Below, piece after piece: positions 13,942 to 36,384 of a stretch of 64,000 nt of DNA; position 1 is the first letter of the stretch, and each line of letters starts with the position of its first letter. A model generated the notes under the pieces. The model saw only the letters and a list, made by a program, of their open reading frames with translations. It did no database searches and was not told the origin of the DNA. The DNA is taken from the NCBI RefSeq assembly GCF_030144855.1, contig NC_082731.1:31806001-31870000 (forward strand), given 5' to 3'. This stretch comes from Hypanus sabinus. Its lineage: Eukaryota. The position numbers and the translations under genes are program-made.

Positions 13942-14141
13942 NNNNNNNNNNNNNNNNNNNNNNNNNNNNNNNNNNNNNNNNNNNNNNNNNNNNNNNNNNN
14001 NNNNNNNNNNNNNNNNNNNNNNNNNNNNNNNNNNNNNNNNNNNNNNNNNNNNNNNNNNNNNNNNNNNNNNNNNNNNNNNNNNNNNNNNNNNNNNNNNNNN
14101 NNNNNNNNNNNNNNNNNNNNNNNNNNNNNNNNNNNNNNNNN

Positions 14142-16522
14142 CTCTCATCTCCTCCGGCAGGGAGTCCACCTGCCACTGACCCACTAAGAGTCCGGAACAT
14201 TTCGCCCAGTTGATCCTGGCGGAGGATGCTGCCGAGAAAATGTCTTGGCACTCGCGCATCCTCCGCAGGTCACTGGGATCTGTCATCATGAGGAGTACAT
14301 CATCGGCGTAGGCCGAGAGGACGACCTCCATGTCCGGTTCGCGTAGAACCAGACCTGTCAGCCTTCGCCGTAGGAGGCTCAGGAATGGCTCGACACAGAT
14401 CGCGTACAATTGACCGGACATGGGGCATCCCTGACGTACTCCTCTTCTGAAGGGAATGGGCGCTTCCAGCAATCCATTGACCTTAACAAGGCACTCTGCG
14501 GCAGAGTAGAGGAGCCGAACTCGGGCCACAAAGTGTGGTCCGAGCCCAAAGGCCTGCAGAGTGCCCACCAGGAAACTGTGGTCTACCCGGTCAAACGCCT
14601 TCTCCTGGTCAAGAGAAAGAAACGCTGCCGGGGTCCCAGTCTCCTGGTACAGGTGGATCAGGTCCCGTACTAGGTGGACATTGTCCTGGATGGAGCAGCC
14701 CGGGACCCAGTCTCCTGCTGCAGGTGGATCAGGTCCCGTACTAGGTGGACATTGTCCTGGATGGAGCGGCCCGGGACCCAGTCTCCTGGTGCAGGTGGAT
14801 CAGGTCCCGTACTAGGTGGACATTGTCCTGGATGGAGCGGCCCGGGACTGTGTAAGATTGGTCAGGATGAATCACCTGTCTCAGTCCTGAACCAAGACGG
14901 TTGGCCATTGCCCGGGCGAAGATCTTGTAGTCCGCGCACAAGAGGGAGACCGGGCGCCAGTTCTTTAGCAGGCGAAGGTCTCCCTTCTTGGGCAGCAGGA
15001 CCACGACAGCTCTCCGCCATGAGAGGGGCAATTCCCCGGTGGCTAGGCTCTCCCCTACAACAAGGCTGTAATCGACCCCCAAGACATCCCAAAAAGCCTG
15101 ATAAAACTCCACACTCAGACCATCTAAGCCAGGGGATTTACCCCTCCGGAGTTGCCGAAGGGCAGCAGACAGCTCCTCCCCAGTCAGGGAGGCGTCCAGA
15201 CGCGCTGCGTCATCGGGGCTGACCTTTGGTAAATCTTCCCAGACCTCACTGCACGCCCCCGCATTTGACGGATCCGGTGAGAATAAGGACCGATAGAAAG
15301 TGCGGACTTCTTCGATAATTTCGTCAGGATCCGTGATGGAGGAGCCATCAGCAGCCAATAGCTCCACCAGCTGCTTTTGAACTCCCCGCCACTTCTCCAA
15401 CGAGTAGAAGAAGGGTGAGCCGCGGTCCAAATCTTGCAGCATTTGGATCCGCGACCTCACATATGCACCTCGGGACTGCTGAAGCTGCAGATTCCTGAGT
15501 GCGTCCTTCTTCTCCTGGTATTCCTGCCACGTTTGATGGTCTCCACCGGTCGAACCAAGACGGGTCTCCAGGTCAAGCAACGCTCTCTCAAGCCGCTCAA
15601 TCTCAGAGTCCCGCCTCTTTGTCGACCCCCTAGTGTACTCCCGACATAAAAACCGGATGTGGGCCTTGCCCACATCCCACCACAGCCGTAGGGAGCAGAA
15701 CTCTCTCCGTCTCTCTCTCCAGGCGGCCCAGAACGCTCGGAATGAATCATGGAATCGGCTGTCCTCCAGCAGCCGGTTGTTAAAGTGCCAATACCCGGAT
15801 CCCACCCGAGGGTGCAGAGGAGTAAATTCCATCCACACAAGGTGATGATCCGAGCACGACACCGGCCGCATGGAGGAAGCCGACACGCGGGAGACATAAG
15901 CCCGAGAGATATACAGGCGGTCTATCCGGGAACCCCCCTCTCTCGATCTTCTGGAGAAGGCGCTAGAGTCGGGGTGAAGATTCCGCCAGCTGTCCACCAA
16001 GTCAAAGGAGCCGACTAGCTCCTTTAACTTTTTCGCTGATGCCGGGTCGCGCTGGAGGCCCGAGCGGTCCTCCACCTCGAGGGTACAGTTGAAGTCTCCC
16101 CCGAGGACGACGCAGTCCCCCAGGTCGATGGAACTCAGCAAGGTGGACAGCTGACAGAATAGGCGCGTCTGCATCACCCCGCGCCTCGGAGCGTACACGT
16201 TGATAAAATGTAACGGTACACCATCCAGGCGCACAGCCAGGTGGAGCAGACGGCCGGGCACAGCATCTTGGACTCCTACGATTTCTGGCCGGAAGGTTGG
16301 GGCCAACAGGATCGCCACCCCACTAGAGTTGGAGCTAAGGTGACTCATGTAGACCCCGCCCTGCCACTCCAGGAGCCAAGCGGACTCGTCCCCCGGGGTG
16401 GTATGGGTTTCCTGCAGGAAACTCACCGCGTATCTCCCGTCCCTGAGGACTGAGAGATTGTTATACCTGCGGAGAGAGCCCCTGCTACCATTTACATTGA
16501 GTCTAGCTATGGTAAGCTTCAT
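14142..16522 (-). pseudogene. Tx1 ORF2 (APE endonuclease + reverse transcriptase), frameshifted by a 71-bp triplication and truncated by the gap
   Basis: MKLTIARLNVNG, FLQETH, INVYAP, GGDFN, SRIDRLY, SDH; KSPGLDG, DQEKAFDRV, GVRQGCP, YADD. A 71-bp unit at 14635, 14706 and 14777 adds 142 nt. Confidence 0.92.
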
Positions 16523-16534
16523 GTCGGAAGCACA

Positions 16535-18583
16535 CTAGGCCTCAGCACCAGTCCCCTTCCCACTGAGAGCGATGGCGCCCTCAGCCGCACTCTCCCGAAG
16601 AAAACCGAGAATATCCTTTGCTTTCCGGGCCCGACTGCTACCATCGCTACCCTGTGACCCACCATCTCCCGAAGGAGCGAGGCTGCTTTTCATCCTGATG
16701 TCCCGCACCAGGTCATCCAGGAAGGATTTCAGCTGCCGCCTGTCATTCCCTGACACAGCATTCCTCTTCCCCTTCCCCTTCCGTCTGAGGATGACCCTCA
16801 GGGACTTCACCAGCCTCGGCATGCTAGGCCAGCGAAGCGAGGCTAGTTTAGGCCGATGCTTTGCACCAACGGAGGAGTGAATAAACTCTCTGATCTCCTC
16901 CACAGGTATCAATGGGGACTTCTCTGGAGGGGTGAGGATGTCCATTGTCTCGCTGTCAAATGAATCCCCCTCCAACCCCTCACTGCAGACAGATCCCCCA
17001 CCGTCCTCCTCAGGTGGTGTATAAGGTGGCTGCCCCTGTAACCTACACTGCACAGTGGGTACCTCCCCCATACCTTCCCGCTCCACCGTCGCAGCAGTCT
17101 TACCCACAGTTGCGACGATGGAGGGAAAACCCCAAGGGACTCCCTGCAGGCCATTAGTTGATGGGGTCGGCATGCAGGTTACATCACCCTCCCCAGGAGA
17201 CAGGCGTGAAGGGGACCCCAGCAGCTCTGGCCCAATGGATTCACTGGCAGCCTGATGCTGACTGTGAGAGAGCCTGGTCTCCTCTCCACCTGTACTACTT
17301 AATACATTTGCCTCCAAGGAGGCGCTGACTGCTAAGTCCTGGGTGGAGGGCTCCAGGTCTGTTTTAGGCGTGCAAACAGGCCCAGCACTAGCTTCATGCA
17401 TAACCACACCACCCACCCCAGGACTGGTGTCTACATCTGGGGATTCAGGGTTAGACACAACTCCCACCTGGATCCCCACCCCTGTCTGGGACTCCCCCTC
17501 ATCTGCATTCTCTGCTCTCTTGGGGGAACAATCCCATCTCCTCTTCAAGCCGGAGGAGCACACAGGTGCAGAATTCACCGACAGCGCGGTACTCTCCGCT
17601 CCTATCGCCCCGTCCAGCCGTACGCTTCCCCGAGTCTCCCCCTCCACCTCAGGGCAAATGGGCGTGAGCTCTGCGGTCTCGGGGGCCGACTTCTTCACGT
17701 GTTTCGACTTCTTCCTCGCTTTCTTGCCCCGCCCGGACTCCACCCCGTCCCTCGCCTGAACCTCCCCACACGTAGCCCCAGGATCACCCGCCTGAACCAC
17801 AGGGGTAGGAGCAGACGTAGGAATAGGGGCAGGGTTAGAGACAGGGTCAGGGGCAGGAGCAGGGGTCGGCACAGGTGTTGGAGCAGGGATGGGATCAGGG
17901 GCAGAGGTAGCTGGGGCACTGGTTCCCGAAGTGGACTCTCTGGGTTTTCGGGTGCTAGGACAGTCCCTCCGAAAGTGCCCCACCTCCCCGCACGCATGGC
18001 ACCGTGGGCGCTCAGAGCTCCAATACACCTGTTAATCCACCCCCCCGTGCCGGACAGTAAACCGGCCCTCAACTTCGTCCTCCCTTTCCAGTTTCATGAA
18101 TACCTGTCGCCGGAAAGAGATTACGGTCCGGAGGGTGCGCCTCCTGAATTTGTGCCTGATGGCAGTTATTTCTGACCGTACTTGCCCCAAGCGGGCCAAT
18201 GCGGGAAGCAGGTCCTCGTTGGGGATGAAAGGCTGTACGTGACCGAGGACGATGCGTTGTGTGGGAGCTGTCACTAGCTCCATCTGTAAAAAGATGTTCT
18301 CCACCGTGATCCCTCTACTGAGGGCCCGATGCACCAACTCATCATTCCTCAGGTAAAACACCGCCTTCCCGAACTCCTTCTCAGCGGCCAAAACACCATC
18401 TCTCCCCAACAAGTCCTCCATGGCCTCCGCGCACTTTTCCAGGGTAGTTCCAGTTCGCAAAATACATTGCACCCCGCGTTCAACTTTCACCGCCCGAAAC
18501 AGGGCGTTGTCCGAGGCCGGAGAGGCAGCCGCCTTTGCATAACTCCCCGAAGGCCTGCGACTCCCTGTAGACCGGTCCGGCAT
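16535..18583 (-). pseudogene. Tx1 ORF1 (gag-like, zinc knuckle) with one in-frame TAA
   Basis: ORFs 18032-18583 and 16535-18028 share a frame and are separated by TAA (VD*QVYWS). SYAKAA N-terminus, FRRQVFMKL, CHACGEVGHFRRDC (CX2CX4HX4C). Confidence 0.9.
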
Positions 18584-19107
18584 GTTACTTGTGTGTCCGA
18601 ACCGAGAATGATACGGTGGTGCAGGTTATAAAGTCTCGGAGTGAATTGAGTAACTGGTGGGAAAAGTTTGTACTCGACGGTACCTTGCTGGCCCAATGCC
18701 AGAAATTCCAACGCCAGGAAAGGCTCCGTTAGTCCTGTAGAAACTTCCAGGCCGTGAGAGGTCGAGACGTCCCAAACGACGGTTCGGCTCCAACACCGAA
18801 CGAGAATCCCGACGATAGAGATGGAAGGAGGTTGCCCCGATGTCAATGGGGACAAACAACGTCGTTTGCCTCCGGTTTTGGGAGCGAAACTGCTTCACGG
18901 CGAGTTGCCAGCCGCCACAGCAGAGTGCTACGCAGTTCGAGGCCGTAAACGAACCCCGTCCAAACTGGCAGAAAAACTCCAAACGAAGCTTCCACTCTAA
19001 ACCAGCCGCTCACTTAGAAGTTCAAGGGACGTTGGAAACCAATTTCCAAGCCATTCAAGACCTTCATAAAGTAGTTTATCCCCGATTTCTCCCAGCGCAA
19101 TCAGAAC

Positions 19108-20166
19108 AGCTCCACTCTGTGTCTGACCCCGGGAGTGTGTGATGGGACGGTGTGGAGGGAGATTCACTCTGTGTCTGACCCCGAGAGTGCGTGATGGGAC
19201 GGTGTGGAGGGAGCTTCACTCTGTGTCTGACCCCGGGAGTGTGTGATGGGATGGTGTGGAGGGAGATTCACTCTGTGTCTGACCCCAGGGGGCTGTGATG
19301 GGACGGTGTGGAGGGAGTTTCACTCTGTGTCTGACCCCGGGAGTGTGTGATGGGACGGTGTGGAGGGAGATTCACTCTGTGTCTGACCCCGGGAGTGTGT
19401 GATGGGACGGTGTGGAGGGAGATTCACTCTGTGTCTGACCCCAGGAGTGTGTGATGGGACGGTGTGGAGGGAGATTCACTCTGTGTCTGACCCCAGGAGT
19501 GTGTGATGGGACGGTGTGGAGGGAGTTTCACTCTGTGTCTGACCCTGGGAGTGTGTGATGGGACGGTGTGGAGGGAGATTCACTATGTGTCTGACCCCGG
19601 GAGTGTGTGATGGGACGGTGTGGAGGGAGTTTCACTCTGTGTCTGACCCCGGGAGTGTGTGATGGGACGGTGTGGAGGGAGATTCACTCTGTGTCTGACC
19701 CTGGGAGTGTGTGATGGGACGGTGTGGAGGGAGATTCACTATGTGTCTGACCCCGGGAGTGTGTGATGGGACGGTGTGGAGGGAGTTTCACTCTGTGTCT
19801 GACCCTGGGAGTGTGTGATGGGACGGTGTGGAGGGAGATTCACTATGTGTCTGACCCCGGGAGTGTGTGATGGGACGGTGTGGAGGGAGTTTCACTCTGT
19901 GTCTGACCCCGGGAGTGTGTGATGGGACGGTGTGGAGGGAGATTCACTCTGTGTCTGACCCTGGGAGTGTGTGATGGGACGGTGTGGAGGGAGATTCACT
20001 ATGTGTCTGACCCCGGGAGTGTGTGATGGGACGGTGTGGAGGGAGATTCACTCTGTGTCTGACCCCGGGAGTGCGTGATGGGACGGTGTGGAGGGAGCTT
20101 CACTCTGTGTCTGACCCCGGGAGTGTGTGATGGGACGGTGTGGAGGGAGATTCACTCTGTGTCTGA
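19108..20166. repeat. 52-bp minisatellite, ~20 near-identical copies
   Basis: cactctgtgtctgaccccgggagtgtgtgatgggacggtgtggagggagatt at 19113, 19165 ... 20153. Confidence 0.98.
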
Positions 20167-20264: not shown

Positions 20265-21488
20265 TCAGTCCCTCTTCATCCTCTTGCTTCTCCGCACCGC
20301 CACCGCATCGTGCTTCTTCTTCTCCACATGGATCCAGGTCCTGGGGACAGGGGAGTTCCTGCCTATCCCAGCCTTCTCTGATGCCCTCGCACAGCTTAGC
20401 ACTTGCCCACTGGAGAGCAGGCCCAGGCTCCGGGCCTCATCCTGTGGGATCCTCCAGCACGCTCTGTCCTCCAGCTTGACGGCCACCTCACCCTCTCCAC
20501 AGCCATCCCTGATGGACATGGGATCCTGAGGAAGGAAATGGCCATGAGAAACATTCCCGGCACCCTGGCATGGAGTAGGGGCCTTACCTTCGGCCTGGGC
20601 CTCGCTGTGGGCCTGAGCCACTGTTAGGGACTTGATTTGAGTCTGGGCTTCAGCTGAGCCCATGATTTGGGTTTGTGCCTCTACCTTGGCCCTAATTTGG
20701 CTCTGGGCTAGAGCTGGGGCCTTGATTTGGGCTTCATCCCCCATTAAGCCACCAATTTTGCCCTGGGCTTCATTTGGTCCCCTGTTTTGAGTTTCAGTCT
20801 CAGTTGAACCCCTCATTTGGGTTTGGGCCTCACTTGATTCCATGATTTGGGCCTGGGGTTCAGTTGGAGCCTTGCTGTCGGCGTGAGCCACTGCTAGGGC
20901 CTTGATTTGTTTCTGGGATTTCGATAAAACCCTGCTTTTGGCTTGATCATTTGCCTGGGCCCTGATTTGAGCTTCTGCAGTTGAGGCTCTGTTTTTGCCC
21001 TGGGATTCAATTGGGCATCTAGTTTGGGCCTTATCTCCAGTTGGGGCCCAGCTTTGGATGGAGCCTTTAGCCTGTCTGTCCTGCTGCCCTGAGGCTGGCA
21101 TCCCAGCATCAGTCAGGCCTGATGGCCCAGTCCTACAGTCTCTGCTGACAATGGGGCCATGTGATCCAGGTTGAGATACCCCAGGGCTGAGGGGAGGGGT
21201 CTGACAGACCCTCTGGAAGGATTCGGGGGGCAGGACAGTCGGTGGGGGAGGCTGGACCAGAGCCTGGGCATTGACTGAGGAGGATGTGCACTGGCCGTGG
21301 GCTGACTGCAAGGCCAGGCGCTGGAGGTGGCTGGAGTAGGAGCAGTCCTGCCCCAGAGGGGATAGCAGGAGTTCCGGGAGGGGCTGAGTGGCCTCGGGTT
21401 GGCGGGCCAGGGGTGGGGAGGGGCAGCGGAGGATGGGGGGCACAGTTGGTTGGCCAGATACAGCCTCCGCTGTCGGGGTCTTTGAATC
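20265..21488 (-). CDS. NUTM1: NUT-family protein, last coding exon (low-complexity region, 10-aa repeats, basic C-terminus RRSKRMKRD)
   Basis: cag acceptor at 21489-21491, phase 0, 1224 nt open to TGA. A large terminal exon with a basic NLS-like tail is typical of NUTM1. Confidence 0.8.
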   Translation of the reverse strand, partial: DSKTPTAEAVSGQPTVPPILRCPSPPLARQPEATQPLPELLLSPLGQDCSYSSHLQRLALQSAHGQCTSSSVNAQALVQPPPPTVLPPESFQRVCQTPPLSPGVSQPGSHGPIVSRDCRTGPSGLTDAGMPASGQQDRQAKGSIQSWAPTGDKAQTRCPIESQGKNRASTAEAQIRAQANDQAKSRVLSKSQKQIKALAVAHADSKAPTEPQAQIMESSEAQTQMRGSTETETQNRGPNEAQGKIGGLMGDEAQIKAPALAQSQIRAKVEAQTQIMGSAEAQTQIKSLTVAQAHSEAQAEGKAPTPCQGAGNVSHGHFLPQDPMSIRDGCGEGEVAVKLEDRACWRIPQDEARSLGLLSSGQVLSCARASEKAGIGRNSPVPRTWIHVEKKKHDAVAVRRSKRMKRD

Positions 21489-22603
21489 CTGTGGAGAGGA
21501 GAGAGGGGGCGAGTTAGTGAGGAGAAGGAGGAGTGATAGAGGAAGGGGGTAGGTGTCAGGAAGAGTGGAGCAGGAGAAGGTTCAGGATGGTGAGGGATGG
21601 AGGGCAGGTATTAGTGAAGGGGGTAGCAAGGGAATTTGAGGGGGGAAGGGGAGAGAGCAGAAGTGAGATGAGGGGAGAGGGAGGGGAAGAGGGATAGAGA
21701 TAGCGGGTTTAGTGAAAAGGGAGGTATGAGGGTAACGGGGAACGAGTTGGGAATAGAGCAGGAGGAAGGGTAGGGAGGAGGTGAGCAGCAGAAAGGAAAG
21801 GGTGAGGGGCTGTTGCTGAGCAGAGGTGATGGAGGGAGTAAGGAAACACGGAGGGGGAGAGGAAGGGAGGGAGAGAGGGAGGGAGAGAGGGAGGGAGAGA
21901 GGGAGGGAGAGAGGGAGGGGGGGCGGTTAGGGAGCAGAGGGCTGGTTGTTGAGGGTGGGAATGATGGGGAGATATACGGGGTCAGATACGAGAGGCATTT
22001 TGAAAGGGGAGGGAGGGGGTGTTGGCCACTTCGCTCTTCCTCCCTCTTATCTCCGCTCAAAATGCACCATAACTCCCTCAGATCCACACGCTCTCCCTCC
22101 TTCCCACCCCCACTCCCTCCCTCTCTCATCCCCTTCCCACTCTCCATTCTCCCCCTTCCCCAAAATAAAACATAGGAGCAGGATTAGTCCATTTGGCCTA
22201 TCAACTCTGCTCTGCCATTTCATCCTGGCTGATCCATTTCCCTCTCGGCCTTTCCTTGTACCCTCCTCTTTTCTCTCTCCACTCTCTCCCCTTTCTCTCA
22301 CTCTAACCTTACCCCTTTCTCCCATCTCGCCCCTCTTTCTCCCCCACTTTATCTCTCTACCTCCTCCCCTTTCTCTCTCCCTCTTCCCTCTGCCTTTCTG
22401 CTCTCTCTCCCCTCTCCCTCTTCATAACCCCTCTTTCCCTCACCCTCCCATACTCATCCCTCCTCATCTCCCACTTCCCCTTCCCCTCTCTTTCTTTCTC
22501 TCTCTCCCACTTCCTGTCTTCCTTCCCCCCTCTCCCCTCTCTATTTCTCCCCTTCACCCCTCTCCCCCATCTCTTTCTCTCTCTTTCCGCATTCCTCCCT
22601 CAC

Positions 22604-22705
22604 CTCGGCCTCCGACGCTAGGTCTCGGAGCAGCTGCGGGAAGTCCAGGGACGCGTGGGGGGAGAGGAGGTCGGACAGGAAGCGTGGGTGGATGATGGTT
22701 TCAGT
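22604..22705 (-). CDS. NUTM1: NUT-family exon (TETIIHPRFLSDLLSPHASLDFPQLLRDLASEAE)
   Basis: cag acceptor and GTGAGG donor, 102 nt, phase 0/0. Matches human NUT VEAVIHPQFLADLLSP. Confidence 0.9.
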
Positions 22706-24029
22706 CTGTAAGGAGAGAGAGAGTCATGCATCACAGAAACAGGCCCTTCGGCCCACCTGGCTCATGCTGACCCAGATTCCCAACTGAGCCCGCCCCACCC
22801 CGTCCGCGCATGGCCCAGATCCCTCCCATCTCCGAGTATTTTAAACCATGTCAATGTACTTGCCTCATCCACTTCCTCCAGCCACATACAGAGCACCTTT
22901 AGGGAAAAATGTTGTCCCTCAGGTTCCGATTAAATCTGTCCCCTCCCACTCTTCATCCTCCTCTCTCTCTCCCCCAACACTCCCCTCTCATTCTCTCACC
23001 CCTCCTTCCTTCCTCTCTCACTCTCTCCCCTCTCTCCCACACTTTATCTCTACCCCTCCCTCTCTCCCCCTCCCTTCCTACTCTCCCTCTCTCCCTTAAT
23101 TCTCCCCTTTTCCCTCCTCTCTCCCACTACTCTCCCTCCCACTCCCTCTCCCCTCCCTCTCCTCGTCCTGCTCTCTCCCCCCTCCCACTCCCTCTTTCTA
23201 TCTCCCCTCCCACCTTCTCCCCTCTCTCCCTCCCTTCTCTTCCCCCTTTCTCTCCTCTCTCTTCCTCTGCCCTCTCCCTTCCTTCTCTTCCCCTTCTTTC
23301 TCCCCTCCCTCCGTTCCTCTCTCTCTCTCCCCTCACCCTTCCCTCTCTCTCCCCACTTTTCCCCACACTTCGTCCTGAGTATTGATCTCGGTTCTGTGAC
23401 AGGAAAGATGTGACATCCTCTGGTTCTCGGTTCTGTGAGCATTCACCCTGTCCGTGCCCCCCTCCCACCGTGTTTTACACACCACCGAAAGCTCTGCCTC
23501 AGTTTCCTACGCCCCAGGAAATAAAGCCCCAATCAGCCCAGTCTCCCTCTGTAACTCAGTCCCGGTCACCTCCTCCAGCCGATGGCATCTTTCCGGTAAC
23601 AGAACCGATCTCATACCCCAGGTGACAGCGCTCCGCGGGTCAGGCGGCATCTACGGAGCAGAATAGGGTCGATGTTTCAGGCCGAGGGGGGCAGAAGCTA
23701 AAATGAGGAGCTGGGAAGGTGGTGGGGGTGATATACGGGACGAGGGGACTGGACCCGGAAGGAAGAGGGACCGCGGTGGGAAGTGATGGGCGGGTGAGGG
23801 GGTAGCCGGAATGGGGAAACAGGGAAGGAGGGAGGGGATGGAAATTGCCTGAAGTCGATGTTCACGCCGCCAGGCGGGACCTGAGTGTGCCCTCGTCGTG
23901 GGAGAGAGGAGGAGGTGGACAGTCGCGACAGGGTGGGACCGGGAAAGCGAACCGAAGCGGGTAGGTACGGGGAGACGGAGCTGTTCTGCCCACTCCATCC
24001 CGTCTTTCAGTATCCCAGTAGCCTTCACT

Positions 24030-24930
24030 GAGAAATGACTGGGCCTCCTCAGCCGTCTATGGCAGAGGATTCTCCAGATTCGCCACAGTCTGGCTACAGA
24101 AATTGCTCCTCATCTCCGTTCCAGAGGGACGTCCTTCTCCGAGGCTGTAATCTCAGTCCGCTATAGGAAACATCACATCCACTCTATCTAGGCCTTCCAA
24201 TATTAGATCGATTTTAATGAGAGGTGTCCCCTCCCCTTCTCCTGAACTCCGACGAGGACAGACCCAGGGACTCCTGGTACCCACTATCATTCTCGTAAGC
24301 CTCCGTCTCCAGTACCAGCACGTTCCTCGGCTAGAGGGCTCAAAACTCCTCACACTCCTCCAGTGCCTTATAAAGTGAATGCCGACATTGCATTTGCCTT
24401 CCTCACCACCGACTCAACCCGCAATGTTAATCTTTAGGGACTCCTGCACCAGGACTCCCAAGTCCCCTTTTGCACCTCAGATTGCCCCCCCCATTTAGAA
24501 AATAGCAAAAGTGCACGACCATACACTTCCCAATACCGTGTCCCATCGGCCGCTTCTTTCCTCTCATGCGGAGTCCCCGACTCTGCGACCCTCCCCGTTC
24601 CTGGACTGTAAACTTGGCCAAGGAGCTGCCAGTTCCATCTTCCGGATCGTTAGCGTAGAAAACAAACACAGCTCGATCCTGCGGAACGCCGGCGGCCAAC
24701 CAGGAAAGGGCCCCTTTCTCCCCACTCCATCAGCCGCAGCTCGATCCATGCTGGTATCTTCTGGTAATACAATGGGTTCTTATCTGGCCAAGTGGCACCG
24801 TGAGAAAGGCCTTCTGAAAATCCACAACATCCACCGCCTCTCCTGCCTGTCAGTTCCTTAAAGAATTACAGCAGTTTTTCCCCTTATGCCATGCTGGCTT
24901 GGCCTGTTTTATCATGCGCCTCCAATTACC
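24030..24930 (-). mobile_element. Decayed CR1-type LINE fragment
   Basis: Reverse-strand remnants (ccactctatctaggccttccaatat, gcatttgccttcctcaccac, caagtcccttttgcacctc). Confidence 0.6.
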
Positions 24931-24994
24931 CCGAAGTTCCTCGCCAGACACACCGCCCAGGATCTCACATGGTCTGTGCAAACTGGCTGTGCGG

Positions 24995-25577
24995 TGTAAG
25001 AGGCAGAACAGCGCCCATTTCACCTCAGACGGTTGAAGAAGTCCGGCATGAGTCCCCGAATCCTAAGAACTTTCTTCACGGGCACGATCGAGAGCATCTC
25101 GACTGGCTGCCTCACTGCCCGGTACAGGAACTGTACCTCCCTCAATCGCAGGGGCACGATCGAGAGCAACTCGACTGGCTGCCTCACTGCCTGGTCTGGG
25201 AACTGTACCTCCCTCAATCGCAGGGCTCTGCAGAGAGTGGTGCGAACAGCCCAGCGCATCTGTAGTTGTGAACTTCCCATGATTCAGGACATTTACAGAG
25301 ACAGGTGTGTAAAAAGGGCCCGTAGGATCATTGGAGACCCGAGTCACCCCAACCATAAACTGTTCCAGCTGCTACCATCCGGGAGACGGTACCGCAGCAT
25401 AAAAGCCAGGACCGACAGGCTCCAGGACAGCTTCTTCCACCAGGCCATCAGACTGATGAACTCACGCTGAGTATTTCTATGTTACACTGACTGTCCTGTT
25501 GTACATTGTTTATTACAAATTACTGTAATTTGCGCGTTCAGATGGAGACGTAACACAAAGATTTTTACTTCACGTGT
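24995..25577 (+). mobile_element. Rex1/Babar-type LINE 3' fragment with a 72-bp tandem duplication
   Basis: TIESxxTGCLTAW, LQRVVRTAQRI, HPNHKLFQLLPSGRRYRS, SFFHQAIRL. The duplicated unit starts at 25081 and 25153. Confidence 0.85.
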
Positions 25578-26459
25578 GTGGGCGACTCGAGAACAGTACC
25601 TTCAATGGATACGATTAAATATTCCTGTTTCGGTCCGTCACAGCTAAAAAGCACAACTGCTTCCAAGGACAGTACAGTCAACAGAGATGTCTCAATGCGT
25701 TTAAAAGAACTATCGCTGCTTAAAACTGACAGAAACAACACCGACTGTGGACGGAAATAGGATTCCGCGTAAGAAACGTGGGTGCAGGTCAGGGATACAA
25801 GTGCGCTTCAGGAAACGGGGTTTTAAACTCCATATACCAGCTACCTTGCTGGCAAACGTGCTGGCTTTGATGAATAAAATCAATGATCTCAGAGCTGAAT
25901 CAGGGGGACATTAGGACCGCGTGTGTCCTTTCTTTCACGGAATCCTGGTTAACCCCTTCCATACCGGATGCAGCGCTCCAGATCGACGGGTTCACTGTAC
26001 ACCGTCAGGATAGATCTATAGAGTCTCTCTAAAGCAGAGGTGGAGGAGTATGCCTCATGATCAACTCTTCTTGGCGCACAAATGTATCAGTTCGGTCCCA
26101 GTTCTGCTCACCAGACCTGGAATATCCAGCGGTAAAGTTCCGTCCTTTTTACCTACCACGGGAGTTCTCCGGGGTCAGTTTACATTCCACCTCAGGCCAA
26201 CGTCAAGCAGGCTTCAGATGATCTGAGCAATGGGATCAACATGCACAAAACAGCCACCGTAACGCCTTCACTATCGTTTTGGGAGATTTTAACAAGGCCA
26301 GTCTGGAAAAAAATCACTAAGCAACTATCATCAACAAATTACTTGCAACCCCAGAGGAAACAGCACACTGGACCATTGCTACACCACGATCAAGCACGCC
26401 CTCACTTCAGGAAGCCTGGACTTCCACTCGCTGAGAGCGGGCAGACACTGAAGACCAGC

Positions 26460-27108
26460 CGCTACGGTCCGGTCCGGAGCCAGCACTCCGGGTCCTGATC
26501 CTGTCCGCGATCTCCGGACTCCGGGTCTTGTAGCCGTCCCTCCTTTCACCCTTGAGCCAATTAGTCACACCTGTGGATCACCGAGGCTTGTTGGGGCTCG
26601 AGGAGGCGCACCTGATGCCCATTGGCTGGCGGGGTATATAGGGGGGAGGGGGCGTTTTGCCTACTCTGTTCCTCTGGTTGCCCTGGCTTGGAGTTCTCCT
26701 TGTTAAAGACGAGTCCTTTGAGTAAGTCTGGCAGTCACCCTGGACCTAGTTCCCTTCCTATCCCTTGCCTCTGATGGGCAAGCCTGGCTGGACTGCCGTT
26801 GCCCCTACCTGTCCCTCGCTGCTGATGGGTTGTGCCCCACAGCCTACCCAGGTGCCCCGTGACCTGCCCAGGCCCCTGTGTTCCTGCCTGGGAGGCCCTG
26901 CCCTGGAGTTATGCGGCCTGCCCGGTGAACTCCACCCTGCCTGAACTCTAAGACTCTCCCAGAACCCCAGAATCACCTTGAACGCCATGTCCCTCACGCA
27001 CCCCACGGTCACCACATCTTGCCTATCGTTTAGTTGTTCCCGTCCTGCCCTTTGTACTTCAGTACCTGTGTCCTGCACTTGGGTCCAGCCTCCTGTCCTC
27101 TTAAGACA
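26460..27108 (+). mobile_element. Solo LTR (Gypsy-like), 649 bp, 5-bp TSD CCAGC, inserted in the Rex1 element
   Basis: ccagc at 26455-26459 and 27109-27113. Ends cgctac...aagaca (decayed TG...CA), TATA-like gtatatag at ~26634, and tcctgcacttgggtcc near the 3' end. Confidence 0.8.
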
Positions 27109-27678
27109 CCAGCAGTGAGGACCAAGAAGGTACGGACAAGGGAAGCACAGAAGTGACTACAGGACTGCTTTGAATCGGTGAACTGGACTGTGTTCAGGGA
27201 TTCATCTTCCAACCTGGATGAGTTTGCTGCTGTTGTCACCGACTTCATTAAAACCTGTGTGGATGAGTGTGTGCCTACAGAGACTTACTGTACATTCATT
27301 CCCAGACCAAAAGCCGTGATTGAACCAGGAGGAATGTCGTCTGCTGAAGGCTAGATGATCTGAGGCCTTCAAGTCTGGCGATCCAGGCCTGTACCAGAAA
27401 ACCAGGTATGAGTTGCGGAGGGCTTTCTCAAGGGCAAGGAGACAATTTTGAATGAGGTTAGAGGCGACATCGAATGCACGACAACTCTGGCAGGGCTTGC
27501 AAGACATTACTTCCTACAAAGCAAAACCCAATAGCATGATTGGCAATGATGCTTCACTACCAGATGAACACAATGCTTTATATAAGCAAACACAAAGGAC
27601 ACTTGGATGCTGTGGTCAAATCAACACGTACAAAAGCTGGGTGAAACCAGCAGGTCGGGCAGTATCTGTTGGAACGAG

Positions 27679-27716
27679 CTGTCAATGTTTCGGGCTGAGA
27701 CCCTTCATCAGGACTG
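27679..27716 (-). ncRNA. Minimal (type I) hammerhead ribozyme motif of Penelope-type repeat, partly decayed
   Basis: Minus strand: cagtc-CTGATGA-agggtctcagccc-GAAA-cattgacag. The core boxes CUGANGA and GAAA and stem II are intact; the GUC site appears CpG-decayed. Confidence 0.6.
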
Positions 27717-29134
27717 ACAAAGGTCAATGGTAGATGCAATCCCCATGGCTCTCCACACAGCTTTAGACCACCTGGACAACACAAACACCTATGTCAGGAT
27801 GCTGTTCCTCAAATGTAGCTCAACATTTAACATCATCATTCCCACAATCCTGATAGAGAAGTTTCAGAACCTGGGTCTCTGTACCTCCCTCTGCAATTGG
27901 ATCCTCAACTTCCTATCCGGAAGACCACAGTCTGTGCGGATTGGTGATAACATCTCCTCCTCACTAACGATCAACGCTGGTGCACCTCAGGGGTGTGTGC
28001 TTAGCCCACTGCTCTACTCTCTGTATACACGACTGTGTGGTTAGGCATAGCTCAAATACCATCTATAAATTTGCTGATGATACAACCATTGTTGGTAGAA
28101 TCTCAGGTGGTGACGAGAGGGCGGACAGGAGTGAGATATGCCAACTAGTGGAATGGTGCCGCAGCAACAACCTGGCACTCAACGTCAGTAAGACGAAAGA
28201 GCTGATTGTGGACTTCAGGAAGGGTTAGACGAAGGAGCTCATACCGATCCTCATAGAGGGATCAGAAGTGGAGAGAGTGAGCAGTTTCAAGTTCTCTGAG
28301 GATCTAACCTGGTCCCAACATATCGATGCAGTTATACAGAAGGCAAGGCAGAGACTACACTTCATTAGGAGTTTGAAGAGATTTGGTATGTCAACAAACA
28401 CACTCAAAAACTTCTATAGATGTACCGTGGAGAGCATTCTGACAGGCTGTGTCACTGTCTGGAATGCAGGGGCTACTGCACTGGACTGAAAGAAGCTGCA
28501 GAAGGTTGTAAATCTAGTCAGCTCCATCTTGGGCACTAGCCTACAAAGTACCCAGGACATCTTCAGGGAGCGGTGTCTCAGAAAGGCAGCATCCATTATT
28601 AAAGACCTCCAGCATGCCCTTTTCTCACTGTTACCATCAGGTAGGAGGTACAGAAGCCTGAAGGCACTCACTCAGCGATTCAGGAACAGCTTCTTCCCCT
28701 CTGCCATCCGATTCCTAAATGGACGTTGACAGTGGACATTGAACTCTTGAATACTACCTCACTTTTTAAATACATATTACTTCTGTTTTTTGCACGATTT
28801 TAAATCTATTCAATATACGTACACTCTAATTGATTTACTTTATTATTATTATTTTGTTTTTTTTCTTCTATATTACATATTGCATTGAACTGCTGCTACT
28901 AAGTTAACAAATTTCACGACACATGCCAGTGATAATAAACCTGATTCTGATTGTGATTTAAGGAATAAAATTAATTCAATTCAATTCAAACCTCATCTTT
29001 AACAATAAACTCTAAAACCTCAGCAACACTGGGGTCAGGTTAACTGGCCTGGTGTCTCCTCCCTTTAACAGGGATGTTACAGTCCTCTGGGATAATCTGC
29101 AACTCCAGTGATCCTTGAAAGGTCCATGTGACCA

Positions 29135-29655
29135 TAACACGTGGCAAGAATTCGACTATTTGGCCCATTGAGCCTTCTTTCCCATTCAATCATCGCTTCT
29201 TATCCCTCTCAATCATTCCTCCCCATAACCTTTGACCCCTCCCTTACTGGTCAAGAACCTATCAACCTCTGTTTTAAATAACCCCAATAATTTCCCTCCA
29301 CAGTCATCTGTGGCAATGAATTCCACAGAATCTCCACCCTCTGGCAAAAGAAATACGTTCTCATCGCTATTCTAATGGTACAACCTTCTATTCTGTGCCC
29401 TCTGGTCCCAGACGCCCCCAGCTGTAGGAAATACCCTCTCCACGTCCTCTGTATCTCGGCCTTTCAATATCTGATCAGTTTCAATGAGATCCTCCCTCAT
29501 TCTGCTGAGCTCCAGTGAGGACAGGCCCAGAGCCATCAAAAGCTTCTCATATGTTAACCCCTTCATTTCTAGGACAGTTCTCGCCAACCTCCTCTGGGCC
29601 CTCTCCAATTCCAGCACATCCCTTCTCCGATAGTTGGCCCCAAACTGCTCTAGTA
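29135..29655 (-). mobile_element. CR1-type LINE 3' fragment
   Basis: Minus-strand LERAQRRLARTVLEMKGLTYE...MREDLIET. Confidence 0.8.
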
Positions 29656-30031
29656 ATGTCTCCACAATCTCTCCAGCTCCTGTTTCAGGACTCTGGAGTG
29701 AAGTCCACCCAGTTTTGGTGACTTATCCACAGCTTTCTAGAACTTTGTCCTTACTTCTGGCTATTAAGTTCTTCTACCCCTGACCCTCTTGAAGAGGGGG
29801 GCAGTGAGAGAGGTGGAAGAGGTAAGAGAAAGTGGGTAAAGGAGGGGACAGAGATATGGGGAAGGGAGGAGACATGGTGGTGGGGGAGAGAAAGGGAGAT
29901 GGAGTGTTCTCGGTGACTCCACTCAGTCCCCAATGTAACCATTCGGCCTGAGTGACCCAGATCGAGCCCTGTGACACTGATTGACTCTTGCTGATCTGCA
30001 GCAACTCCAACTGACCACTGGTTGCCCCTAC

Positions 30032-30300
30032 CTTGCTGATGAAGGAGTCCTTGCTGCAGAGTTTCTCGATGTACCTGAGGATCTCGACCTCCTCCTCACA
30101 ATGCTCCTCAGGAGGTTCTCGAAGGTGAGCCTCGGTATCGGGCGGCGGCAGGCCCAGGGCCTCCATGATCTCAATGTACTGCTCCACCGCCTCGAGGGGG
30201 ATGGACTGGTGGTGCCCACCCGTGCCACGGGCTGGGGTCTTCGGCTGTTTGTGGGACCGCTGGGATCCTCCTTTACCTCCGGCCTTCCGTCCACCAGGGT
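30032..30300 (-). CDS. NUTM1: NUT-family exon (...IPLEAVEQYIEIMEAL...ILRYIEKLCSKDSFISK), p300-binding TAD region
   Basis: cag acceptor and GTAGGG donor, 269 nt, phase 1 to 0. Matches human IPPEAVKEYVDIMEWL and LLSYINELCSQKVFVSK. Confidence 0.92.
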
Positions 30301-30364
30301 CTGCAAGAGGGAATTCATGGGACGGGGGTCAGAGGGATGGCAGAGGGACTTCCTCAGCAATTCA

Positions 30365-33300
30365 ACTCAAACAACCCAACCCAAAATAACTGTATACAAC
30401 ACAACCAGCATGACCAAATACAACATTACACATTTCAACCCCCCAGAACCCAACACCACCCAACCAAACCATCCCAATACAACCCCAGCAGAATCAAACA
30501 CAACACAACGTAATTCAACACCTTCCAACCCACCAGAACCCAACACCACCCATCCAAACCATCCCAACACAACCCAGCGCAATCGAACACAACACAACAC
30601 AACATAATCCAACACCTTCCAACCCACCATAACCCAACACGACACACCCAAACCATCCCAACACAACCCAGCGCAATCGAACACAACACACCTTCCAACC
30701 CAAAACAACCAAACCATCCCAACACTATTGAACACAACACAACATAACCCAACACCACCCAACCAAACCATCCCAACACAACCCCAGCAGAATCAAACAC
30801 AACACAACATAACCCAACACCACCCAACCAAACCATCCCAACACAACCCCAGCAGAATCAAACACAACACAACATAATCCAACACCTTCCAACCTACCAG
30901 AACCCAACACAACACAACACAACCAAACTATCCCAACACAATCGAACACAACACAATGTAATCCAACACCTTCCAACCCACCAGAACCCAACACAACACA
31001 ACACAACCAAACCATCTCAACACAATCGAACACAACAGAATGTAATCCAACACCTTCCAACCCACCATAACCCAACACCACCCAACCAAACCATCCCAAC
31101 ACAATCGAACACAATGCAACGTAATGCAACACCTTCCAACCCAAAACCCAACACTACACTACACATAGCCTCAAGATTCTGGGCAGTAGGATGGAGATGA
31201 GGAGGTACTGCTTTTCCCAGAGAGCGGTGAATCTGTGGAATTCTCTGCCCAATGAAGCAGTGGAGGCTACCTCAGTAAATATATTTAAGACAAGGTTGGA
31301 TAGATTTATGCATTGTGAGGGAATTGAGGGTAATGGGGAAAAGGCAGGTGGGTGGTGATGAATCCATGCCCAGATCAGCCATCATCTTATTGAATGGCAG
31401 AGCAGGCTCAACCAGTCAGATGGCTTACTCCTGTTCCTATTTCTTATGTTCTTACGTACTTACACAACACAACACAATCCAACACCTTCTGACCCACCAT
31501 AACTCGACACAACTCAACCCAAACTGACCCAGCCCAACCAAACACACCAAAAACATAACCCAACACCTTCCGACCCACCATAACTAGACACAACTCAACC
31601 CAAACTGACCCAGCCCAACCAAACACACCAAAACATAACCCAATACCTTCTGACCCACCATAACTCGACACAACTCAACCCAAACTGACCCAGCCCAACC
31701 AAACACACCAAAAACATAACCCAACACCTTCTGACCCACCATAACTCAACACAACTCAACCCAAACTGACCCAGCCCAACCAAACACACCAAAAACATAA
31801 CCCAACACCTTCTGACCCACCATAACTCGACACAACTCAACCCAAACTGACCCAGCCCAACCAAACACACCAAAAACATAATCCAACACCTTCCAACCCA
31901 CCATAACTCGACACAACTCAACCCAAACTGACCCAGCCCAACCGAACACACCAAAAACACAACCCAACACCTTCCGACCCACCATAACTCGACACAACTC
32001 AACCCAAACTGACCCAGCCCAACCAAACACACCAAAAACATAACCCAACACCTTCTGACCCACCATAACTCGACACAACTCAACCCAAACTGACCCAGCC
32101 CAACCAAACACACCAAAAACATAATCCAACACCTTCCAACCCACCATAACTCGACACAACTCAACCCAAACTGACCCAGCCCAACCGAACACACCAAAAA
32201 CATAACCCAACACCTTCTGACCCACCATAACTCGACACAACTCAACCCAAACTGACCCAGCCCAACCAAACACACCAAAAACATAACCCAACACCTTCTG
32301 ACCCACCATAACTCAACACAACTCAACCCAAACTGACCCAGCCCAACCAAACACACCAAAAACATAACCCAACACCTTCTGACCCACCATAACTCGACAC
32401 AACTCAACCCAAACTGACCCAGCCCAACCAAACACACCAAAAACATAATCCAACACCTTCCAACCCACCATAACTCGACACAACTCAACCCAAACTGACC
32501 CAGCCCAACCGAACACACCAAAAACACAACCCAACACCTTCCGACCCACCATAACTCGACACAACTCAACCCAAACTGACCCAGCCCAACCAAACACACC
32601 AAAAACATAACCCAACACCTTCTGACCCACCATAACTCGACACAACTCAACCCAAACTGACCCAGCCCAACCAAACACACCAAAAACATAATCCAACACC
32701 TTCCAACCCACCATAACTCGACACAACTCAACCCAAACTGACCCAGCCCAACCAAACACACCAAAAACATAACCCAACACCTTCTGACCCACCATAACTC
32801 GACACAACTCAACCCAAACTGACCCAGCCCAACCAAACACACCAAAAACATAATCCAACACCTTCTGACCCACCATAACTCGACACAACTCAACCCAAAC
32901 TGACCCAGCCCAACCAAACACACCAAAAACATAATCCAACACCTTCCAACCCGCCATAGCTCAAAGCAACACAACCCAAACTGATCCAGCCCAACCGATC
33001 CAACGCAACTCGACACAATCCAGCCCTACACAACACAACACAATAGAATCCAACACATTCCAATTCACCATAACCCACAACCCAACCCAGTACAACTAAA
33101 CACAACACAAGATGACCTAATCCAATGCAACATAATACAATCGACCTAAGGCAATCCAACCCAACAAAACCCATCCCAACATAATCCAACCCTATAAAAC
33201 ATTTCTCAAACCAACCCGACCCAATCCAACACAATGCTCCCCAAATCTGCCAATCCCCAGCCCACTCTACTACCAGCCTTATCCCCTTCCATCCCATCCC
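30365..33300. repeat. CAACA/CCAA-rich satellite; homogeneous 81-bp core array at ~31470-32950 (~18 copies); CR1 3' fragment inserted at ~31165-31455
   Basis: 27-aa periodicity of the repeat ORFs. Unit cccaacaccttctgacccaccataactcgacacaactcaacccaaactgacccagcccaaccaaacacaccaaaaacataa. Confidence 0.95.
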
Positions 33301-33454
33301 CAGTATGGCTACCAAACCAGTTCAAACCATCACCCTCATCAACAACACAATCCAACGGAATAATTACTGCTAGGGTCCATGAGTTGGGGTTTAAGGTCTG
33401 GAGCTGAGGTCAGAGTTGAGGGGTTAGAGTTTGGCATTGGAGGGTCATACTGAC

Positions 33455-33585
33455 CTTCCATGACCTGTTTCTCAGGTTTGGCCTTGGTCCTGGACACCAG
33501 CTGGACCCCAGGCGAGATCCCGGCCGGCAGTGGGACTGGGTCTGCAGACCACTGAGCGTTCTCCTCCATCTCGAACTCCATGAAC
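33455..33585 (-). CDS. NUTM1: NUT-family exon (FMEFEMEENAQ...KQVME)
   Basis: cag acceptor and GTCAGT donor, 131 nt, phase 2 to 1. Matches human FMEFEAEE. Confidence 0.88.
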
Positions 33586-34076
33586 CTGCGGAGAGTCGTT
33601 TCAGAGTCAGTGCCGCAGCAGAACTGAAGATCTACCACCAGAGCCCAGCACACCATCCGCAGTGGAAACCTGCGCTAAGTCAGGACCTCCCACCGGCCCT
33701 TGCACCACACTCCTAGAAGGCGTCTTACATTCCCAGCTGAGACCACCCACTCCAAGCAGTTACCAGCCCCACAACTACTCTCTTAGCAAAGACCATCCTC
33801 TTCTTTGAGACCAACCCAACCTCTCTCGGCAGAGATCATCCCAGCAGAACCATCCCCTCCAGCAGAGCCTAGCCCCCTCCCACCACTATCCAGCAGACCA
33901 AGCCCCTCCCTATGGAGGCCAGCCCTCCCACCTCTCTCCCAGCAGACCATCCCCTCCAGCAAAGCCCAGCCCCTTTCCACCTGGTAGACCAATCCTCCCA
34001 GCAGAGACCATGCCCTCCCAGCAGAGATCAGACCCTCCCACCTCCCTCCCAGCAGACCTGCCCCCTTCCCACTCAC

Positions 34077-34205
34077 TTCTCCGCCATCTCGTAGTAGATC
34101 ATCCGATCAAAATTGCTGAGGCGGCACCATTCCTGCACGGCCAAGGGCACTCCCTCCTCGGTGCCCAGCTGTGGTCGGCACTGGGAGAGGGAGCGGAGGA
34201 CTGGT
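34077..34205 (-). CDS. NUTM1: NUT-family exon ([43 protein letters not shown])
   Basis: cag acceptor and GTGAGT donor, 129 nt, phase 2/2. Matches human [42 protein letters not shown]. Confidence 0.95.
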
Positions 34206-34723
34206 CTGTGGGGAGAGGCGGTAGGGAAGTGGGGGGGTCATTCCCGTCAATGGCTGTCCCAGACCCACCCTCACTCAAAAAATGATGGGCGGGGCGGTGA
34301 TTTGAGGCTCTGCATCAGCTGGGTCACGGTGCTGAAGGAGGGCCAATGTGAGATGTGGCACTTTGGGAAGACAAATGGGGGGACAGGACTTTCTCAGTGA
34401 ATGACAGGACCCTGCGGAGCGTTGTAGAGTAGAGGGACCCTGGAGTGCAGGTACATAGTCTCCTGAAAGTGTTGTCACAGGTAGACAGGCAGGCTGGCCT
34501 TCATCAATCAGGGCACCAGTTGGGACGTACTGTTGCAATTCTTCAAGAAGTCGGTGTTCAAACCTGCTTCAGGAAAGATGCCATTAAGCTCGAAAGAGTG
34601 AAAACGGGTTTACGAGGATGTTGTCAGGACCCAAGGGATGGAGTTATAGAAGATGTTAGGCAGATCAGTACTTTATTCCCTGGAGTGTGGGAGACTGAGG
34701 GGTGACCTGTATAAAATCATGAG

Positions 34724-35470
34724 CAGTTCAGGAAGGGTGAGATGAAGGAGCTCATACCAATCCTCAGAGGGATCAGAAGTGGAGAGAGTGAGCAGTTTCA
34801 AGTTCCTGGCTGTCAAGATCTCTGAGGATCTAACCTGGTCCCAACATATCGATGCAGTTATACAGAAGGCAAGACAGTGGCTATACTTCATTAGGAGCTT
34901 GAAGAGATTTGGCATGTCAACAAATACACTCAGATAATTCTATAGTTGTACTGTGGAGAGCATTCTGACAGGCTGCATCACTGTCTGGTCTGGAGGGGCT
35001 ACTGCACTGGACCGAAAGAAGTTGCAGAGGGTTGTAAATCTATTCAGCTCCATCTTGGGTATTAGCCTACAAAGTACCCAGGACATCTTTAGGGAGTGGT
35101 GTCTCAGAAAGGCAGCGTCCATTATTAAGGACCTCCAGCACCCAGGGCATGTCCTTTTCTCACTGTTACCATCAGGTGGGAGGTACAGGAGCCTGAAGGC
35201 ACACACTCAGCGATTCAGGAACAGCTTCTTCCCCTCTGCCATCCGATTCCTGAATGGACATTGAACCCGTGAACACTACCTCACTTTTTAAATATATATT
35301 ATTTCTGCTTTTTGCACTATTTTGAATCTATTCAATATATGTATACTGTAATAGATTTACTTATTCAGTATTATTATTTTTCTCTTCTTCTATATCACAT
35401 TGAACTGCTGCTGCTAAGTTAACAAATTTCACGTCACACGCCAGCGATAAGAAACCGGATTCTGATTCTG
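34724..35470 (+). mobile_element. Rex1/Babar LINE 3' fragment, near-identical to 28210-28960
   Basis: ESILTGCITVW...LFSLLPSG...SFFPSAIRFLN; tail gattctgattctg. Confidence 0.9.
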
Positions 35471-35656
35471 GGGTAGGGCGAATGCACACAGAGCTTTTCC
35501 CCAGGGCTGGGGAATCAAAAACCAGAGGGCACAGGCTGATGGTGAGAGGGGAGAGAGGGCCTGGGTGACAACGTTTTCACACAGAGGTCGGTCCATATAT
35601 GGAGGGAGCTACCAAAGGAAGTAGTTGAGGCAGGCAGATTAAGAATATTTAAGACT

Positions 35657-36384
35657 ATTCAATGAATATACTGTTGGTGGCTGCTAAAAAGACTTACTAG
35701 GAAATGGTTATCACAGGAGAGCCCAACTTTAAATGCATGGATGGAAATTACAATGGACATTTACAAAATGGAGAAGATAACGGCATCTGTTAATCATAAG
35801 TTGGAACAATTTGATTCATACTGGGGGAAAATAGTTTAACGACGTAACACCTCATAGGCCTGATTTTATTCTCACAGATCGATGAATATGTTATAAAAAA
35901 AAAGATCACTCCCTACGTGTGCATAGCTTTCTCCTTTCACTTGTTCTTTCTTTCCTCTCTTTTCTATAAGTGTCCTCATACCTCAGATAAATCAAACACG
36001 AGGAAATCTGCAGGTGCTGGAAATTCAAACAACACACACAAAATGCTAGTGGAACCCAGCAGGCCAGGCAGCATCTATAGGGAGAAGCCCTGTCAACGTT
36101 AACAACAACACACACAAAATGCTGGTGGGACGCAGCAGGCCAGACAGCATCTACAGGGAGAAGCCCTGTCAACGTTAACAACACACACAAAACACTCCCT
36201 ATAGATGCTGCCTGGCCTGCTGCGTTCCACCAGCATTTTGTGTGTGTTGTTGTTACCTCAGATAAATAAGTGGAGATTTGTGGCAAATATGATTATATGA
36301 TATATATGTACAGTATCTGAAATATATCTTATAGAAATGTTTGTTTGATAATGAACTTCAATAAAAATTAATTACAAATAAAAG
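35657..36384 (+). mobile_element. L1-clade 3' fragment with 15-bp TSD
   Basis: TSD agaatatttaagact at 35642-35656 and 36385-36399. ORF2 C-terminal remnant (RKWLSQESP, WMEITMDIYKMEKIT) and A-rich aataaa tail. Confidence 0.8.
35993..36253. mobile_element. Penelope-derived palindromic insert with 14-bp TSD, inside the L1 fragment
   Basis: TSD tacctcagataaat at 35979-35992 and 36254-36267. Two direct and one inverted copy of cacacaaaatgctggtggaacgcagcaggccaggcagcatctatagg. Confidence 0.8.

Follow-up and report, generated by a model that had tools for sequence, protein, structure and literature searches.

LINEs that reside in tandem arrays with precise junctions are known from R1/R2 in rDNA and from TRAS1/SART1 in telomeric repeats, with R2 relying on a restriction-like endonuclease and R1, TRAS and SART belonging to the R1 clade. 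In mouse L1, tandem monomers of ~200 bp are found directly upstream of the 5′UTR in a single orientation, and these monomers occur with L1 copies. The target-specific LINEs of the Tx1 clade include Tx1L, which is found in the Tx1D transposon, Keno (U2 snRNA genes), Kibi/Koshi ((TC)n and (TTC)n) and Tx1-Mar (Mariner-N4_AMi). Many Tx1 families are target-specific (Kojima 2015, PMC4494074), the criterion applied in that study being one sequence type in >20% of flanks, and satellites ("Sat") are listed among the targets of Tx1 families in its Fig. 3. The snRNA-headed Tx1/SINEU elements carry a piece of the target at their 5′ end via read-through transcription (Kojima 2015, PMC4494074), and for the R1/R2 and TRAS1/SART1 LINEs, co-transcription with the target assists 5′ joining (as cited in PMC4494074). 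In non-mammalian animals, the combination of an L1-superfamily ORF2 and a CCHC ORF1 has been tied to the Tx1 clade (Ivancevic 2016, PMC5203782).

The window analyzed here, a stretch of 64,000 nt from the stingray Hypanus sabinus, harbors a minus-strand non-LTR retrotransposon whose 5′ end meets a 52-bp satellite array, as shown in Table 1. Tandem repeats occupy 40% of the non-N window and minisatellites 37%, so the adjacency of element and array is by itself not beyond chance; the association goes beyond chance because the joint recurs in other copies. In our estimation, the probability is about 0.6 that the element represents a multi-copy ray LINE of the Tx1 type, belonging to the L1 superfamily, whose insertions occupy a fixed position in an independent and abundant 52-bp satellite.

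Table 1. Features of the retrotransposon and the adjoining satellite array, in window coordinates.
Feature	Position	Strand	Details
Non-LTR retrotransposon (5′UTR, ORF1, ORF2 with APE and RT)	14143-19107	minus	
5′ untranslated leader, 524 nt	18584-19107	minus	ORF1 ATG at 18583
ORF1, ~682 codons	16535-18583	minus	two ORFs, 183 aa and 497 aa long, sharing a frame
ORF2 first part, 593 aa	14741-16522	minus	APE endonuclease (~15845-16498), linker, RT start
71-bp tandem triplication within RT	14627-14848		TRF period 71, 3.1 copies, 96%; self-BLAST
RT continuation in shifted frame, through YADD box, ending at gap	14143-14745	minus	RVT_1 profile positions 45-193 of 205
Assembly gap, 200 N	13942-14141		covers remaining ORF2, 3′UTR and 3′ junction
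Five junction letters AGCTC	19108-19112		broken-unit tail or element's first letters
52-bp satellite array	19113-20166	plus	20.3 units; TRF score 1933, 95% matches

ORF1 is laid out as a conserved N-terminal domain, a CCHC zinc knuckle (~17954-18004, with a zf-CCHC match of E 4e-6 in the domain search) and a long low-complexity tail, and is interrupted by a single stop at 18032-18034. At position 18032, the window has a T; every contig of all four sequencing runs reads A there, so the stop is private to the window copy. Mobula birostris P0001 shares 86% identity with the N-terminal domain, versus 63% for the C-terminal 497-aa piece; this difference and the private stop indicate that the element family is under selection. 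Comparison of the N-terminal domain with PDB sequences gave nothing below E 0.08 and no RRM match, and its single-sequence fold reached a pLDDT of only 40. ORF2 begins 12 nt past the ORF1 stop and matches Exo_endo_phos at E 7e-16 and RVT_1 at E 1e-25 (domain search). The two extra copies of the 71-bp repeat add 142 nt to the RT, and the translations revealed that the flanking reading frames are offset by one. As the original prediction had claimed, the 3′ portion of the element is hidden by the assembly gap; the part of ORF2 inside it is estimated at roughly 500 codons, based on relatives that are 1250-1300 aa long. No minus-strand remainder of the element was detected by tblastn to the left of the gap, and a different repeat of 20 bp lies beyond it, the 5′ flank being the only one visible. 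The window copy is young yet dead: its ORF1 holds a private stop, its RT carries the 71-bp triplication, and the gap cuts it short.

When compared with solved structures, ORF2 matched human L1 ORF2p across residues 3-569 with E 9e-53 and R2 with only E 6e-4; among these solved structures, it is nearest to the L1 superfamily rather than to R1, CR1 or R2. Its apurinic-type endonuclease is N-terminal and followed by the RT, which is the order found in the Tx1 clade, and the CCHC knuckle assigns ORF1 to type I (RRM and/or CCHC) and not to the mammalian coiled-coil type II. On the strength of the L1-superfamily ORF2 and the CCHC ORF1, assignment to the Tx1 clade is plausible. No named Tx1 reference was among the matches of protein searches with the element's proteins, and metagenome scans with ORF1 and ORF2 returned nothing, or just 25-38% relatives in short contigs. 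The stingray element shares with the target-specific Tx1 LINEs an L1-superfamily ORF2 with APE and RT, a CCHC ORF1, a multicopy repeat as neighbor and a constant junction nucleotide, but differs from them in its 52-bp ray satellite target, its stingray host and the 5′ junction being the only one visible. Residence in a tandem array with a precise junction is likewise shared with R1/R2 and TRAS1/SART1, whereas the closest solved relative of the stingray element is L1 ORF2p.

Only the letters AGCTC separate the leader from the first full satellite unit, which agrees with the direct abutment without spacer proposed earlier, and contigs from four organisms reach the joint across the leader, making the description of the element as 5′-complete a reasonable one. 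The unit tails in the array are AGATT (13/20), AGTTT (5/20) and AGCTT (2/20), and AGCTC agrees with the last, a minority tail, at 4/5 letters. The proposed placement of the junction inside a unit is therefore weak, with 4 nt behind it. Within the array, the 38-nt satellite core was matched 19 times versus 0 expected (array count), and a partial 156-bp higher-order pattern was observed (unit table). The array stops abruptly at 20166, 14 nt into unit 21, with no significant satellite-like sequence and no gradual decay past this position (score of 15 versus 12.4 +/- 2.1 for shuffles).

The read evidence consists of contigs from four runs (X1, X19, X20 and X22), from which presence and the dominant path can be read but not copy counts, and the statements on contigs apply to the pieces listed, among >1,100 loose ends and >113,000 pieces. 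In run X1 (organism A), record 6 spans 18959-19136 across the joint, with a length of 178 nt and a depth of 81. Its one difference from the window is listed at 19078, and the contig therefore has the identical AGCTC. It is the dominant contig over the joint in organism A, where contigs of the element body range in depth from 123 to 161 and diverged single contigs from 7 to 9. The X1 contigs represent other copies and not the window locus, because they differ at the private sites 18032 and 19078. In X1, a foreign loose end is attached to the satellite at 19111; had it been an internal piece of the element, it would have pointed to a 5′-truncated copy at the same site, but it had no match in the element's visible 5 kb. 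In run X19 (organism H), two contigs among those listed lie over 19027-19082, with a total depth of 232.2 (227.3 and 4.93), and both X19 contigs over the element's last 80 nt enter the satellite at the same nucleotide. Record 9 (18966-19137) harbors 12 differences from the window, and record 10 (18992-19179) harbors 25, with 72 nt of satellite included. The low-depth satellite contigs listed for X19 have depths of 3.6-12, and the depth of 227 therefore suggests tens of copies. Among the contigs listed for runs X20 and X22, none crosses the joint. Both X1 record 6 and X19 record 9 end at 19136/19137, before the 31-mers turn purely satellite, which is compatible with several junction copies that then run into differing unit variants.

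On this contig evidence, which is not a copy census, the 5′ joint is multi-copy and common to two organisms, recurring in another ray. The 5′ flank accordingly shows the same sequence at a fixed nucleotide in many copies, as looked for in target-specific families by Kojima, in the contigs and short of a copy census. Other copies with unrelated flanks, named in the original prediction as its refuting outcome, were not seen among the contigs listed. The constant AGCTC, unlike the usual AGATT, may consist of the element's own letters, or it may reflect common ancestry of the copies at the DNA level.

The word depth in the four runs ranges from 1e5 to 2e7 for the satellite and from 1e2 to 5e3 for the element, the satellite being 10^3-10^4 times commoner in all four. 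Because of this excess, the satellite constitutes an independent multicopy target, and the data favor targeting over carrying. The proposal that the element either targets or carries the 52-mer is borne out insofar as, in the contigs of two organisms, the element's 5′ end continues predominantly or solely through this one joint, but not as to the choice between targeting and carrying. Under targeting, the mechanism would be that of other Tx1 elements: the apurinic-type endonuclease of ORF2 would nick the satellite unit at one set position, target-primed reverse transcription would then insert a copy of the element RNA, and the 5′ joint would thereby arise at a constant nucleotide. By analogy with R1/R2 and the snRNA-headed Tx1, read-through transcripts from the upstream satellite may pair with the target and aid the joint; read-through of the snRNA-headed Tx1/SINEU kind is a possible route to the constant 5′ joint of the stingray element, although no copy of its family was observed to carry a satellite head outside satellite sequence.

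The foremost of the alternatives, though an unlikely one, is that the element itself includes the satellite units, either as 5′ promoter monomers of the mouse L1 kind or as a co-transcribed head that is reverse-transcribed along with it, and carries them to new, untargeted sites. Such units would account for an array that, in every bridging contig, lies upstream of the 5′ end with the same orientation and phase, and for the AGCTC that is constant in the dominant X1 contig. The far end of the array also fits, since an abrupt stop at 20166 with no decayed units past it is what a truncated cDNA would leave, and head-carrying Tx1 relatives exist (PMC4494074). However, the satellite excess is far above the ~20 units per copy that this reading provides, so the satellite mostly exists alone, and the 5′UTR is devoid of satellite-like relics, the local alignment of the leader with the satellite scoring at the level of shuffles. 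Tandem units directly upstream of the 5′UTR in a single orientation do resemble the mouse L1 monomers, but an arrangement of that type would have monomers only within element copies and no independent satellite, and the 52-mer is found as an independent satellite in great excess.

Somewhat more doubtful is the view that one or a few old insertions in the satellite were multiplied together with the array at the DNA level, by unequal crossing-over or segmental duplication, in which case the joint would be multi-copy without any choice of target. The large share of tandem repeat in the window (40%) is favorable to such a process, and so is a joint that is identical in the dominant X1 contig down to the non-consensus AGCTC. 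The same joint is nevertheless present in contigs of another organism that are 7% and 13% different from the window copy, and the other copies have an open ORF1 with an N-terminal domain conserved across rays, as a retrotransposing lineage would show; moreover, the bridging contigs break where the satellite unit variants differ.

Also improbable, and placed behind these two, is a coupling of element and satellite in both directions, in which the array would serve as promoter, units would be carried on the RNA and new arrays seeded, and the element would home to the satellite too; if this were true, a major ray satellite would be spread by a LINE that also homes to it. A chance landing of an untargeted ordinary LINE beside or inside one of the region's many minisatellites is very improbable and has been largely refuted by the contigs, for although a random insertion would be about one-in-three likely to touch a minisatellite (37% of the window) and just one flank is visible, a joint formed by chance would be single-copy and species-specific, whereas the same joint is dominant in X1 at a depth of 81 and is the sole listed path in organism H at 227 + 5.

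Insertion into a satellite is familiar behavior for Tx1 elements and makes no new class, satellites being already on record as Tx1 targets (PMC4494074); the suggestion that a coupled retrotransposon-satellite system of this sort was undescribed is therefore not upheld, as Kojima 2015 names such targets. If satellite targeting by the stingray element is confirmed, rays would possess a LINE family, still live or live until recently, whose endonuclease recognizes a defined 52-bp satellite, and a case from cartilaginous fish would join the target-specific Tx1 elements. It would likewise make available for study a naturally occurring APE endonuclease that is sequence-specific and has a long, known target, and the filled versus empty units between species would serve as a marker of the turnover of satellite arrays.

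The sequence immediately to the left of the 52-bp satellite array is a non-LTR retrotransposon on the minus strand, with the organization shown in the table. Human L1 ORF2p was aligned with the ORF2 of the element over residues 3-569 (E 9e-53), and R2 proteins did no better than E 6e-4. The Tx1 label is plausible, being supported by the type of ORF1 variant together with an L1-superfamily ORF2, as RRM/CCHC variants of ORF1 in non-mammalian animals have been linked to the Tx1 clade (Ivancevic 2016, PMC5203782). No similarity was detected between the leader and the satellite, the alignment score being at shuffle level.

Features of the element, its satellite and other repeats in the window
Feature	Position	Strand	Details
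5′ leader	19107-18584	minus	524 nt
ORF1	18583-16535	minus	~682 codons; CCHC zinc knuckle, E 4e-6
ORF1 stop	18032-18034
ORF1/ORF2 spacer		minus	12 nt
ORF2	from 16522	minus	apurinic-type endonuclease, E 7e-16; reverse transcriptase (RT), E 1e-25
71-bp segment triplicated within RT	14627-14848		96% identity
Assembly gap	13942-14141		200 N; cuts ORF2 just past the YADD box
52-bp tandem array	19113-20166		20.3 units in perfect register; 95% matches; TRF score 1933
Old RT fragment of a separate LINE family	9300-10180	plus	23-30% identical to L1-type proteins; unrelated to the element
Second 52-bp minisatellite	49213-49791		11 units; no element attached
27-bp-unit array	51822-62347		10.5 kb; 394 copies; 92%

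The copy in the window is dead and carries three defects, namely the stop in ORF1, the triplication within the RT, whose two extra copies add 142 nt so that the reading frames on either side differ by one, and the truncation of ORF2 by the gap. The triplication is also a minisatellite arising inside a LINE ORF, and such births are common in this genome. Since the ORF2 proteins of relatives are 1250-1300 aa long, about 500 codons, the 3′UTR and the 3′ junction of the element are hidden by the gap, and no further piece of the element was found to the left of it. In its N-terminal domain ORF1 matches a Mobula birostris protein at 86% identity, against 63% for the C-terminal piece, and Hypanus sabinus gene models contain fragments of the family at 84-88% identity; on these values the family has the look of a retrotransposon lineage that works in rays. 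Pieces of the family at 56-88% identity also occur in four annotated ray gene models (P0002, P0004, P0005 and P0018; Mobula hypostoma 'lipeb isoform X2', two Hypanus sabinus LOC proteins and Amblyraja 'zinc finger protein 830'), which are probably gene predictions contaminated by TE sequence.

The leader and the first full satellite unit are separated by no more than five letters, AGCTC (19108-19112). The units of the array end in AGATT (n = 13), AGTTT (n = 5) or AGCTT (n = 2), so the claim of the original prediction that the junction lies inside a unit depends on the four letters that AGCTC shares with the minority ending AGCTT; AGCTC could equally be the first letters of the element, with the satellite beginning at the TRF unit boundary. 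The 38-nt core of the satellite gave 19 matches against 0 expected. The distal end of the array is abrupt, at 14 nt into unit 21, and no significant decayed satellite units were detected past it. The second 52-bp minisatellite, in reverse orientation, has a TCTGACCC-GGGA core and the period in common with the satellite (weak alignment, score 28), and is possibly a diverged sister of it.

Logan contigs from four public sequencing runs coded as four different organisms (X1, X19, X20 and X22) were aligned to 18000-19330 at 85% likeness; the contigs represent dominant paths rather than copy counts, and the findings hold among the pieces listed. The start of ORF1 and the entire leader up to the joint were covered in all four runs, with summed word depths of hundreds to thousands. 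The body contigs of X1 (organism A) match the window almost exactly (3 differences in 376 and 1 in 127; depth 123-161), and its joint-crossing contig spans 178 nt (18959-19136; depth 81) with one difference. At 18032 and 19078 the X1 contigs have letters different from those of the window, so they represent copies elsewhere, and the ORF1 stop is peculiar to the copy in the window; position 18032 is A in every contig listed from the four runs. In X19 (organism H), 19027-19082 is covered by two contigs only (all_depth 232.2 = 227.3 + 4.93), both of which cross the joint at the identical place, one (18966-19137) with 12 differences and the other (18992-19179) with 25 differences and an extension of 72 nt into the satellite. 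The X1 contig and the first of the X19 contigs reach just 29-30 nt beyond the joint, slightly short of the 31-nt bridging rule. Set against depths of 3.6-12 in the low-depth X19 contigs of the satellite that were listed, a depth of 227 amounts to tens of copies. Joint-crossing contigs end at 19136/19137, ahead of purely satellite 31-mers, which would fit several junction copies followed by differing unit variants. No joint-crossing contig was found among the pieces listed for X20 and X22. In one X1 contig an unrelated 30-nt sequence is joined to the satellite at 19111, within 3 nt of the phase of the element joint; it matches nothing in the 5 kb of the element that can be seen, and may represent either a 5′-truncated copy or the head of a different subfamily.

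As for other copies, whose comparison the original prediction had proposed, the joint recurs in the listed contigs of X1 and X19; it is a property of the family common to more than one organism, and the association between satellite and element is real, non-random and family-wide. The satellite itself is a major independent component of the genome, beyond the heads of elements, with word depths between 1e5 and 2e7 in its bins, 10^3-10^4 times those of the element in all four runs. This abundance favours the satellite as a target and counts against its being explained solely as 5′ monomers or a satellite head carried by the element, an alternative that is unlikely but the best of those remaining, given that orientation and phase are constant, the distal end of the array is sharp and AGCTC is constant. 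Slightly less probable still is that a single old insertion was multiplied together with the array at the DNA level, a reading that accommodates less well a family under selection and the presence of the joint, in the other organism, in contigs with 7% and 13% divergence. On the window alone, chance placement beside the satellite would be the more likely reading, since tandem repeats (84 TRF rows) occupy 40% of the non-N window and minisatellites 37%, so that adjacency there is not above chance, but the joint shared between organisms largely excludes it for the family and leaves it very improbable. This repeat-rich window surrounds an apparently intact NUT-like gene, as called in the original prediction (20265-37633).

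Taken together, the family-wide joint, the independent satellite and the apparently working lineage make a known Tx1-type mechanism most likely, the element being probably a satellite-targeting Tx1-type LINE. Its APE endonuclease would nick a fixed site in the multicopy repeat, the element RNA would be copied in by target-primed reverse transcription, and the 5′ joint would form at a constant nucleotide. Pairing between the target and transcripts begun in the upstream satellite may help the joining, along the lines argued in the case of R2/R1 and of flank-dependent transcription (PMC4494074). Many Tx1-clade families are target-specific (Kojima 2015, PMC4494074), with Tx1 inserting into Tx1D, Keno into U2 genes, Kibi/Koshi into (TC)n and (TTC)n, and Tx1-Mar into a Mariner (PMC4494074). 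The coupling of a satellite with a retrotransposon had seemed undescribed in the original prediction; this is contradicted by the legend of Fig. 3 in the same work, where 'Sat, satellites' stand among the known targets (Kojima 2015, PMC4494074), so that the satellite-associated family of rays would belong to a kind already described.
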